Assembly (NCBI RefSeq): GCF_000315625.1
Contig: NW_005434664.1
Coordinates: 1,035,228 to 1,099,227 of the forward strand
Reading direction: 5' to 3'
Length of the DNA: 64,000 nucleotides
From: Guillardia theta CCMP2712
Taxonomy: Eukaryota; Protista; Cryptophyta
Below are positions 15,889 to 19,738 of this stretch, piece after piece; position 1 is the first letter of the stretch; every line of letters begins with the position of its first letter. The position numbers and the translations under genes were made by a program. The notes below the pieces were generated by a model. That model was not told the origin of the DNA and ran no database searches. It worked only from the letters and a program-made list of their open reading frames with translations.

Positions 15889-18800
15889 ATGGACACCACA
15901 GTGACGGATGGTGATGTCAAGGATGCAAGCAGCAAGGTGATCCTGGACTGCGTGCGTCCATGGTCTTGCTCTGATCGCCATTACCCTCAGGTTACTAACG
16001 AGTTTCGAGAAGCCGAGAAGTCGGAAGAGCCTTCCGGTGACCGTCTTTGTATGCTCCCCTCCCCATATCGTTATGCTTTTCACCAGGAAAAGGTGATGAG
16101 TGGCTGAGAGAGGGCAGCGAGTACATCGGCCAACGGATACGCCGAGTGGTGTACAACGAGAACTCCGAGCCTTTCCCAGCTGATGGGACCGTGGTGGGCT
16201 GGTTGCCAGTTGATCTAGCCGATTTCACCAGCGAGCACACCAACGAGCCTGCGGCTCTCTGGCACATCCAGTTTGATGACGAGAACATTGGTGAGGAGGA
16301 CCTGGAGGAGTTTGAGGTCAGAGACGCCATCGATCTCTACAAGGACAGGTTGAAGGAAGACCCCTCCTCCAAGTCCAAGCCTTCCAAGAAAGGATCCGCA
16401 GGAAGGAAGAGCAAGGCCGATCGCAAGGAGCAGAGTGAAGAGCCGCATAAGAATCAGAGCAGGAAGAAGGCTGCTGGGCAGGGACTTCTCAAGAAGCCTC
16501 AGAGTGCGTTCATGGTGTGGAGCTGCACCATTCGTCCAAAACTCCGAGATGAAAGACCCGAGCTTGACTTCGCTGGGCTGAGCTCTCACTGCGCCAAACT
16601 CTGGCGGGAGATGCCGGCAGACGAGAAGCAGGAGTGGAACAAGAAGTACTCGAAAGCTCTGCAGGACTGGAACGATATGGAGAGTCAGATGCGGATGGGT
16701 GAGGGAGGGTCTGCCAAGCTCTCTCCCGACCTCTCCGAGGTTGACAACAGGTCTATCAATGAGAGCGAAGGCTCCGAGTGCTCTCGATCAGACAAGGGGA
16801 AAGGCAAAGTGAAGCCAACTCCTTCCAAGGATGATTGCTTCGTCATTGTTGTCGATGAAGCTTGGGAGAGTCAGCGCGGGTTTCGACTCTTCGAGATTTG
16901 TTCGTGCCCGACTTCGGATGGTACGTGCAAGGCCCGAGAGTGGTACAGCTCTGCCGACTTTGACGAGTGCAAGTTGGGCCAGCAGAAATTCCTTCCTTCT
17001 CAGCCTTCCGCCAAATCGTTTCAGCTGAAGATCAACTCTTTCTATCCCGTGCAGACCCTGCGAGGTCGGCAGAACAGGAAGGAGTATGTGCAGATAGCGG
17101 GAGAGCAGGACATGGTGTCGGAAGCGTATCAGGTGCTGCGAGGTGAAAGGGCTGGTCACGGCCTTGAGGAGCTGGTAGTGAGGTCGGGAGAGGAGAGCTC
17201 GACTAGGGCTACTCCGTCAAAGTTGACCAAAGAGAAGAACTCCAGGAACTCAACGCCTGTGTCGAAGGAGTGTCAGGAAAAGAACTTGAACTCGGACGAG
17301 GAGCAAAACACATCGACACCACCGAGCTCGAAGGGGAAGAGGAGCATCGGCAACAACGACGTGCGGGAGAGCGAAGGGGAAATTTCGCAGTCAACGAAGC
17401 GGGTCAGGAGGAACTTGGACGTGAATGGGACCCATTCGACGGAAGCGATTTCGGACAAAGAAGGTCAAAGAGCAGCAGAAGCAGGTAATATTTCTAGATG
17501 ACAAGGACAGGAAGATATTGATGGAGATGATAACGGTGACAGTAACGATGCCGATGACAAAAATGATTCCATGTTTATGACGATGACAACGGTATATAGT
17601 GATAATATCTGTTGAGCAGGCTCAAAAGGACTTCAACGAGCTCAAAAGACGACAGGTGCTGATAGATCGTTTGGCTTGATTTCGACACTGACTGCTTGCA
17701 GTGACTGAGAAAGTGCCGTCGCCGGAGGAGCTCCGAAGGTAGCGGGATCAACAAACGTCCCTGTCGGAGAGGAGCTCGTGATCTGATGGGTTGACAGGCG
17801 AGAGGAGGAGAGGCGGCGCAGACATCTCGAGCAACTGAAGCAGCTGAGGAAGGGACTATGGTGCGAGCATGCAGAAGGACGGCAGCGACTCACGGGATGG
17901 CAGGGAGCTCATGGAGAAGGAGAGCTGTGCTCCCCTGATGCTGCGGTTGGCATGGCATGACGCGGCAACTTATCGAGCAGATGGAGGAAAGTGGAGGACG
18001 AGGAAATGATGACGACGATGATGATAATGATGCCAATGAGGCCGATGATGATGATGATGATGATGATGATGATGATGATGATGATGATGATGATGATGAT
18101 GATGATGATGATGATGATGATGATGATGATGATGATGATGATGATGATGATGATGATGATGATGATGATGATGATGATGATGATGATGATGATGATGATG
18201 ATGATGGTAATGATGGTGATGGTGATGGTGATGGTGATGGTGATGGTGATGGTGATCGTGATCGTGATGGTGTTTAAGATGCTGTTGATGTTGATGTTGA
18301 CGTTAGCAATAATATTGAAGATAGTGCGGTGGCGGATGAGATCGGATGACTCTGACAAGTCTACAGGGGAATGGCCGAGGTGCGGAGGCGTCAACGGCTC
18401 CATCACCTTCGCTCCCGAACTCGATCTCCCCTGCAACAAGGGACTGACACTCGCACTCTCACTCCTCTACGAGCTTCAAGTGCGTCGGGGGAGACGGAGA
18501 TGTCGATGAAGGGACTTACAGCCTTTCCGACAGGAGAAGAACGACTTGGTCTCTGTTGCCGACGTCATCCAGATGGCTGGACAAGTAACTCCCTGCTCTT
18601 TCTGTGCTCCTACTCATCCTCCCTCTCAGGTGGCAGTTGAGTTCTCGGGCGGTCCCAAGATCGCGATGCGATGGGGGAGGTCAACAACAGGAGTGAAATA
18701 TCTGTGCTCTGACTCTGACGTGGCAGGAAGCATGTGGACGACCCGGACTGTTGTGCAGACCCTGCTGTCTCTCAAGACCTAGAGCGAGGAAATCCTCCCT

Positions 18801-19738
18801 TCGCTTCCTCTTTGTCTGCTCCTGAGCATCTGCGGCAAATTTTCGGTCTAATGGGCCTGTCTGACCAGGTCTGCCTACCATGTCTTCCCGTACCTCCATC
18901 TGCTCCAGCTAGTTTTCAATCTTTGCATCCTCTATCCACCTATCTGCTCCTGCCACTTCCTCTGCTCTTTCCCTGTCTTGTTCTGCTTCTCACTCTCGCT
19001 TCTCCTCTCCCTCTCCTTCTTTTCTTTTGCACCAGGAGATCGTCGTCTTGATGGGTGCTCACACGCTGGGGAGGGCGCGGCCATCACGGTCAGGGGAAGG
19101 GGCGGCAGCGACTTGCTACACGAGAGATGGGCCAGGGAGGTGCAAGGGAGGGTCGAGCTGGACTCAGGTGAGGCTGAGCTGGGCTTGCCGAGCTGTCAAA
19201 GTCTCATGTCAACCTCAGGAGTGGCTCAAGTTTGACAACAGCTACTTCAAGAACCTCCTGCTGACGGTAGGCATGACCAGCAGCCCCTCCACTTGATTCG
19301 CAGCATTTTCTGCATCATTCTCCAGCCCTCCTAGCCTCTCCCCCCTTCCACTAACTGCATATTTCCTGCTCTGCTCTCCTGCTCTTCATTGCTCGAATCT
19401 AATCTTCTGTTGTTGTCTCTCACGATTCTCCTGCAGCCACCAGCTGATTCTCAGCTCCTTCGCCTCTCGACCGATTCAGCACTCGCAGAGGTTTCCAGCC
19501 TCCGTCTCTAGGGCAACTCTCCAGCTGAACCCGTGCAGGACCCGGTGTTTCGAGAGTGGGTGGAGAAGTACGCGGAGGACCAGGTAGGCTCTTGTGCAGC
19601 TCGCGTAGCAGCTGGGGTTGACCTGGGCCCCAGGAGCTGTTCTTCTCGGACTATGCGCGAACTCACCGCAAGATGAGCGAGCTGGGGGCGAAGTTCGAGC
19701 CTCAGGAAGGGATTGAGGTAGACTTGGAGGAAGGCTGA
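15889..19738 (+). CDS. Predicted fusion: Tudor-like domain + HMG box + class I heme (ascorbate) peroxidase domain
   Basis: Exons 15889-15936, 15991-16036, 16087-17484, 17620-17655, 17702-17738, 17798-17860, 17904-~17990 join in frame. Further exons give [92 protein letters not shown]; stop at 19736-19738. Confidence 0.75.
16491..16685 (+). other. HMG-box domain
   Basis: [49 protein letters not shown] matches the HMG-box consensus (PxxPxSAFxxF...WxxLxxxEKxxY). Confidence 0.9.
17798..19738 (+). other. Ascorbate peroxidase domain (chloroplast-type APX-like)
   Basis: [16 protein letters not shown] (distal Arg/Trp/His), GAHTLG (proximal His), WT[11 protein letters not shown], TD (proximal Asp), and the EWP..GG.NGS segment typical of plastid APXs. 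Confidence 0.95.
18044..18265. repeat. Long (GAT)n / (GGTGAT)n microsatellite in an APX intron
   Basis: Direct reading. Source of the poly-D, poly-M and poly-I ORFs. Confidence 0.95.

Follow-up and report, generated by a model that had tools for sequence, protein, structure and literature searches.

A 64,000-nucleotide stretch of nuclear DNA from the cryptophyte alga Guillardia theta CCMP2712 (contig NW_005434664.1, positions 1,035,228 to 1,099,227 of the forward strand; hereafter the window) holds a single gene that very probably encodes an 816-residue fusion protein, in which a chromatin-type N-terminal half is joined to a complete chloroplast-type ascorbate peroxidase (APX). The gene is transcribed into a single mRNA of 16 exons and 15 introns at positions 15754-19857 of the forward strand, as documented by spliced transcript contigs. 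The N-terminal module would comprise a reader barrel of the Tudor-like kind, a DNA-binding HMG box with a basic stretch, a conserved domain to which no fold is assigned, and a disordered tail that contains a motif resembling a nuclear localization signal (NLS).

Transcript Evidence for a Fused Gene

The spliced 16-exon model of the gene matches the MMETSP/JGI transcript contig L007 in 2705 of 2705 bases, and this base-for-base agreement verifies every intron. Translation of the model yields 816 residues identical to P0001, which is UniProt entry A0A7S4U6Z4 (from MMETSP Transcript_45961). The protein is thus already public, albeit as an unnamed, uncharacterized automatic entry. Its length agrees with the fused product of about 800 residues predicted by an earlier reading of the DNA letters, here called the sequence-only reading. 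RNA contigs place the 5' end of the mRNA at 15746-15801 and its 3' end at 19857. The first in-frame ATG is at 15889 and is preceded by in-frame stops; consequently, the protein cannot extend further at its N-terminus.

Intron-less contigs collinear with the window are found in runs of three different studies: X1 (2697 nt, depth 137), X2 (2761 nt), and X3 (609 + 2107 nt). These RNA contigs were compared over positions 15000-18040, the region with all critical joints, and the joints further downstream rest on L007. Because L007 and X1 may share their raw data, the independent studies are counted as three rather than four. Runs of the X1-X3 kind hold about 0.55 of the sampled words, a share that fits exon-only (RNA) content, whereas a DNA-like run holds 0.96.

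The sequence-only reading had set out from a 484-codon open frame at 16047-17501, which is indeed present, and had proposed that a splice donor shortly before its stop (GCAG/GTAATA at 17484/17485) links it through four GT-AG introns, without a stop, to the peroxidase. Joined in this way, the frame stays open into the peroxidase motif RLAWHD. This donor is used in the spliced contigs of the three studies and in L007. Contigs of all three runs, like L007, skip the four introns precisely (17485-17619, 17656-17701, 17739-17797, and 17861-17903), so that the RNA runs across 17484-17904 as had been anticipated. Two further upstream introns, 15937-15990 and 16037-16086, are likewise spliced out in the X1, X2, and X3 contigs, and past the fourth intron the contigs continue from about 17987 into sequence at about 18368. 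The in-frame TGA at 17499-17501 lies in intron 3, the fusion intron, and is lost on splicing. Retention of this intron would lead to a predicted 501-residue product devoid of the peroxidase.

One Gene or Two

The position of the peroxidase start relative to the available Met codons argues for a fused gene. Between residue 375 and Met546, the spliced mRNA is free of Met codons (17485-17910 has none in frame). Met546, the Met of the sequence ELMEKES, is encoded at 17911. In alignments, homology to stand-alone APXs begins upstream of ELMEKES, at the helix A motif EQLK in exon 6 (17798-17860), and helix A is therefore encoded ahead of all candidate internal ATGs. Together with the hydrophilic N-terminus described below, this arrangement bears out the earlier statement that the peroxidase has neither a start nor a targeting peptide of its own. 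ATGs within intron 3 all run into stops. Transcripts ending at the TGA at 17499-17501, together with an independent transcription start for the APX, had been named as the sign of separate genes; among the X1-X3 contigs none carries intron 3, and in each assembly the contig passes over the fusion joints without branching. In the three assemblies the fused isoform thus appears to be dominant, and minor isoforms are possible.

The reference genome annotation depicts this locus differently. Its protein, XP_005838966.1 (GUITHDRAFT_65752; P0075), is a peroxidase of 289 residues only, from which the N-terminal 525 residues have been split off. It starts at the ATG at 17869, inside intron 6, and as a result its first residues are intron-encoded and helix A is missing. 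Relative to the transcripts, it also mis-splices two more introns by forcing canonical sites around the GA-AG intron 7 and at 18680-18726; those at intron 7 introduce 10 wrong residues. XP_005838966.1 is an ab initio artefact and does not constitute evidence for a separate gene. The idea of a stand-alone APX that begins at MEKES (17911) or at the ATG at 17869 within intron 6 was rejected, since helix A is encoded further upstream and the annotated model contradicts the transcripts.

Outside G. theta, Hanusia phi is the only organism among those searched to have a collinear orthologue, P0002 (EukProt EP00960_P033320, 529 aa), which aligns with residues 1-497 of the fusion protein at 65-67% identity. 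In this record, additional in-frame residues occupy the positions of G. theta introns 1-2, and the GN in its ending (AGNA) is what G/GTAAT would encode. These two features suggest, weakly, that P0002 reflects an unspliced transcript reading into the homologous intron. No contig is recorded for P0002, and two metagenome/metatranscriptome scans gave no match for the Hanusia sequence.

An alternative is that two proteins exist in vivo, namely a Tudor-HMG protein of about 500 residues made when intron 3 is retained and a stand-alone APX made from an internal start, the fused mRNA being an inconsequential read-through (conjoined) transcript. Several data can be held against the fused gene in this respect. 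The reference annotation contains a stand-alone 289-residue APX, and the Hanusia orthologue, as recorded, ends after AGNA, at the G. theta donor position (two codons past it) and thus at the fusion point. Isoform ratios, the level of intron-3 retention, and internal transcription starts are beyond what contigs can give, and X19, the only raw-read RNA run, contributes 4 reads (95-99% identity), too few for isoform ratios or transcript ends. However, the annotated APX has the intronic start, the missing helix A, and the mis-spliced introns described above, and the Hanusia record itself seems to hold retained introns at its 5' end. Moreover, a separate APX would find no in-frame Met in the spliced region and only stop-bound ATGs in intron 3, and three independent assemblies converge on one unbranched fused contig without that intron. 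We consequently regard the two-protein alternative as highly improbable, and one fused mRNA and protein architecture as very probable.

Features of the Locus

The features of the fusion gene are collected in Table 1. Intron 7, as a non-canonical GA-AG intron, is an addition to the earlier gene model. It holds a microsatellite at about 18040-18275, in which a perfect (GAT)n tract some 170 nt long precedes (GGTGAT)n. The region as a whole is intron-rich eukaryotic DNA of about 53% G+C.

Table 1. Coordinates of the fusion gene and its encoded domains (positions in the window; residues of the 816-residue protein).
Feature	Position	Strand	Basis or remark
Coding sequence, 816-residue fusion protein	15889-19738	+	Translation equals P0001 (UniProt A0A7S4U6Z4)
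Coding exons 1-6	15889-15936, 15991-16036, 16087-17484, 17620-17655, 17702-17738, 17798-17860	+	Spliced model
Coding exons 7-11	17904-17986, 18367-18479, 18534-18584, 18630-18679, 18727-18868	+	Spliced model
Coding exons 12-16	19036-19167, 19219-19266, 19437-19490, 19539-19583, 19634-19738	+	Spliced model
Intron 3, fusion intron	17485-17619	+	Joint in contigs of three runs and in L007
Micro-exons 17620-17655, 17702-17738, 17798-17860	17620-17860	+	Charged linker and peroxidase helix A; no Met codon
Intron 6	17861-17903	+	Contains ATG 17869, the start used by the reference annotation
Intron 7	17987-18366	+	Non-canonical GA-AG (donor G/GAAAGT); boundaries match L007 exactly
Tudor-like beta-barrel domain, residues 35-116	16095-16340	+	Family profile; genome search match; AlphaFold2; VIA-align
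HMG box, residues 167-226	16491-16670	+	Pfam PF00505, E 6.7e-14, 52.5 bits (cut-off 25.4)
Conserved middle region, residues 280-385, predicted beta-rich	16830-17147	+	71% identity to Hanusia phi P0002
Putative NLS, KRVRR, residues 469-473	17397-17411	+	Motif scan; kept in Hanusia P0002
Chloroplast-type APX, residues ~527-816, exons 6-16	17798-19738	+	PF00141; 1IYN alignment; tree

The 5' leader of the fusion mRNA carries three short upstream open reading frames at 15767, 15806, and 15844 (2, 13, and 4 codons, respectively). An intron-rich gene of the actin family lies on the reverse strand at 20055-21518, convergent with the fusion gene at the latter's 3' end; its exon pieces match Pfam Actin at E 2e-10, and low-complexity frames rich in Ser, Pro, and Leu surround it.

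The Peroxidase Domain

The C-terminal part of the protein is a class I heme peroxidase of the APX type. The Pfam model PF00141 matches residues 545-781 over profile positions 8-237 of 237, with 140.6 bits against a cut-off of 27. The closest solved relative is the tobacco chloroplast APX 1IYN (E 9.4e-79), and cytosolic APXs follow at about 1e-45. The sequence-only reading had called this APX intact, and alignment to 1IYN upholds that description. In alignments to 1IYN and 46 APXs, the distal residues Arg557, Trp560, and His561 (RLAWHD) and the proximal residues His698 (GAHTLG), Trp731, and Asp762 are all present. The ascorbate site is likewise kept: aligned to 8DJR and 1IYN, Arg707 (RSG) is the equivalent of Arg172 in soybean numbering, and the Lys and Cys of the KESC motif are the equivalents of Lys30 and Cys32. 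The loop typical of chloroplast APXs is found between Arg707 (RSG) and Trp731 (SWT), as aligned to 1IYN. Overall, 54 of the 58 near-invariant columns (at least 90% conserved across the 46 APXs) are retained. From the residues that are kept, the domain is predicted to bind heme and to reduce H2O2 in an ascorbate-dependent manner.

A maximum-likelihood tree places the fusion APX inside the chloroplast-type clade, with 100/98 support against the cytosolic and ankyrin types. It is sister neither to the plastid-type paralogue of G. theta (44% identity) nor to the ankyrin-linked one (34.5%, tblastn). P0056 and P0057, which stand nearest to the fusion APX at 46-48% identity, bear an extension rich in Gly and Ala and lack both the Tudor-like domain and the HMG box. 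The tree pairs the fusion APX with the long-branch P0056 (91/93 support), a grouping that may be due to long-branch attraction. The position of the fusion APX within the chloroplast-type clade is thus not settled by the tree, and no donor lineage is claimed.

The N-Terminal Half

The Tudor-like domain belongs to a family with at least 319 cluster representatives, many of them multi-copy (exhaustive HMMER search, E<=1e-3). Among 51 long relatives, the domain partners include WSD (10), PTM/DIR17-like Tudor (PF21743; 8), HMG box (5), and Chromo (3), as well as DDT, PHD, FYRN/FYRC, zf-CW, WHIM1, and Agenet; this set of partners is uniformly chromatin-related. The AlphaFold2 model, built from a 79-sequence alignment, shows a beta-barrel with a helix at a predicted local distance difference test (pLDDT) score of 91.8. 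VIA-align ranks Tudor domains first (RDM15, SMN, FXR1), followed by SAWADEE domains and chromo-barrels, with Z scores of 5.1-4.8. Foldseek returns the same kinds of domains at E values above 0.1.

Other results speak against the name. The fusion protein itself matches no Pfam Tudor model (PF21743 is absent at E<=1), and PF21743 is reached by just 3 of the 79 copies of the domain. Structural Z scores around 5 are common among small barrels. A Foldseek comparison of the model with the PDB gave no match at E<=0.001, and the family profile found chance ribosomal matches only among PDB sequences. The predicted barrel fold, the Tudor domains at the top of the structural ranking, and the chromatin partners are in keeping with the earlier designation of this domain as Tudor-like. 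The label is reasonable at the level of fold and family context, and is not proven.

Elsewhere in the G. theta genome, at least 18 matches to the Tudor-like domain are spread over about nine loci, including C49:507042-509065, C11:33827-37594, C87, C3, and C1. The C49 gene carries six or more tandem copies and resembles the multi-copy proteins P0185 (9 copies) and P0003.

The HMG box, which the sequence-only reading had also recognized, exceeds the cut-off of its Pfam model by a wide margin (Table 1). A second model, PF09011, barely passes in the same region (22.5 against 22.4). A Lys/Arg-rich stretch lies just N-terminal of the box. For the middle region, no fold could be assigned: AlphaFold2 reaches a pLDDT of only 52, and its Atlas look-alikes are uninformative. 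The NLS-like motif KRVRR, noted earlier from the letters and recovered by the motif scan, is located in a disordered, low-complexity tail rich in Ser, Thr, Lys, and Glu (residues 386-497). The scan also finds a bipartite-like basic motif. Between the N-terminal half and the peroxidase lies a charged linker, about 34 residues long.

Predicted Location

Plastid targeting in cryptophytes requires a signal peptide plus a transit peptide, and import into the periplastid compartment or the nucleomorph likewise needs a signal peptide. The N-terminus of the fusion protein is acidic and hydrophilic, with a maximum 15-residue hydropathy of 0.45 within the first 60 residues. On the basis of hydropathy and the upstream in-frame stop, it bears no signal peptide or transit peptide. 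The C-terminus ends in EEG and offers no peroxisomal targeting signal type 1 (PTS1). Import into the plastid, the periplastid compartment or nucleomorph, or the peroxisome was rejected on these grounds, and the fusion protein is judged not to be a plastid isoform. Because both a signal peptide and a PTS1 are lacking, only the cytosol and the host nucleus are left as locations, and of these two the nucleus is favored by the basic motifs and the DNA/chromatin modules.

The protein may instead act in the cytosol or at another non-chromatin site, its N-terminal half serving as a scaffold or binding RNA or protein. Such a role would be compatible with an NLS call that is a mere motif match, with the capacity of Tudor-like barrels and HMG boxes to bind other ligands, and with the missing Pfam Tudor match. 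The clear HMG box match, the overwhelmingly chromatin-type partners of the Tudor-like family, and the conservation of the basic NLS-like motifs in Hanusia all point the other way, and this possibility appears very unlikely.

A Putative Peroxidase at Chromatin

The explanation that we consider best, and that is probably correct, is a nuclear, chromatin-bound, and catalytically active H2O2 scavenger. The APX moiety would have shed any organelle-targeting peptide, and the fusion protein would enter the host nucleus to be held on DNA or chromatin by its HMG box and Tudor-like domain. There, ascorbate would be used to reduce H2O2 in the immediate vicinity. The fusion most likely originated when a donor just before the old stop of a Tudor-HMG gene came to be spliced to a downstream APX gene. 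G. theta has been reported to lack catalase (PMC9244630), and the alga would consequently depend on its APXs.

Some findings sit uneasily with an active enzyme at chromatin. Four near-invariant positions are changed (R584T, D644H, P661E, and R683L), the branch of the fusion APX in the tree is long (0.72; median, 0.26), and the architecture is recorded in one species only. Heme binding, activity, and localization of the protein are deduced from its sequence.

The main rival holds that the peroxidase serves mainly as a sensor of H2O2 (or of heme or ascorbate) or as an oxidation relay, and not as a bulk scavenger, and that it thereby alters how chromatin is bound or transcribed. When ascorbate is low, H2O2 quickly inactivates chloroplast-type APXs, and such inactivation could serve as a switch on a chromatin protein. 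The chloroplast-type loop is kept and has two extra cysteines, while the long branch and the four substitutions suggest altered constraints. A single enzyme molecule bound to chromatin would also be a weak bulk scavenger and a good local sensor. These arguments are opposed by the retention of every residue for normal turnover and ascorbate binding. We therefore consider a sensor unlikely, and retain the active scavenger as the preferred explanation.

A further and rather doubtful proposal is that the protein is a direct redox-to-chromatin transducer that reads H2O2 in its surroundings (from the plastid under high light, for instance) and passes it on as a signal to chromatin or transcription. 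The signal could be conveyed by oxidation of nearby chromatin proteins or small substrates, or by an H2O2-triggered self-inactivation that changes the protein's own binding to DNA or histones. If true, the transducer would be a natural counterpart of the engineered APEX-chromatin fusions.

Known APXs are either soluble or anchored in membranes, and reside in the cytosol, plastids, mitochondria, and peroxisomes. If the proposed location is correct, one polypeptide would put H2O2 removal or sensing directly at chromatin. In the redox biology of algae and plants, how H2O2 signals arrive at the nucleus and act on it is an open question. The transcript-verified fusion protein is a concrete object in a culturable, genome-sequenced alga, in which it can be localized, assayed, and mapped on chromatin. 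In addition, the annotation of the locus in the reference genome is corrected, and a GA-AG intron is documented by transcript.

Comparison With Known Systems

The fusion protein represents a known enzyme in an undescribed architecture. Among 68 long proteins (449-1428 aa) with a related APX domain, an HMG box is found in P0001 alone. The Tudor-like domain is found in none of the other matches of the APX search, and a peroxidase in none of 152 proteins of the Tudor-like family. Full-text literature searches returned no description of an HMG/Tudor-APX fusion protein. The earlier remark that no described protein has this architecture thus holds across these sets. A study of G. theta peroxisomes mentions three APXs, two of them presumed plastid enzymes and one peroxisomal, and says nothing of this fusion; the isoform that it treats has protein ID 88523, and 65752 is not mentioned (PMC9244630).

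At the same locus, XP_005838966.1 shares the APX exons from 18534 on with the fusion protein and is devoid of the N-terminal half. Among solved APXs, the closest likeness is that to tobacco chloroplast sAPX (1IYN), to which the entire catalytic domain is about 50% identical and with which it shares the heme residues, the ascorbate Arg, and the chloroplast-type loop. In contrast to sAPX, the fusion protein has no transit or signal peptide; in their place stands an N-terminal half of chromatin type, about 525 residues long. Further differences are an 8-residue insertion, the two extra Cys in the loop, and the long branch.

On the N-terminal side, the Tudor-like domain is shared (40-77% identity) with algal and protist proteins that combine it with an HMG box, such as P0004 and Hanusia P0002, and with PTM/DIR17-Tudor and DDT/WSD chromatin proteins. 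In the G. theta protein alone, an enzyme follows.

Other multi-domain APXs indicate that the APX domain has repeatedly been recruited into fusions. In contrast to the G. theta protein, they have other partners, with no HMG box or Tudor-like domain, and several of them are genome predictions without transcript proof. In the unnamed protist and metatranscriptome proteins P0052, P0054, P0055, and P0071-P0073, the partners are MDAR-like, FAD-binding, or ankyrin plus uricase or Cu/Zn-SOD. For example, P0054 combines APX with an MDAR-like pyridine-nucleotide oxidoreductase and an enolase, and P0052 combines it with a FAD-binding oxidoreductase domain. The APX paralogue of G. theta on contig C62 is of the ankyrin type. 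P0049 of Trebouxia sp. C0006 (555 aa), a genome prediction only, pairs APX with a C-terminal BRCT/PTCB-BRCT region, and may be a second link between APX and a DNA-damage or chromatin module.

Outside the APX family, the sperm-nucleus GPx4 (snGPx4) and nuclear peroxiredoxins are peroxide reducers held at chromatin through a basic N-terminal extension, which is encoded by an alternative or added 5' exon. The G. theta protein would resemble them as a peroxide-reducing enzyme kept at chromatin by an N-terminal extension. It differs in that those enzymes use thiol or selenol rather than heme chemistry, have no reader domain or HMG box, and occur in unrelated lineages.

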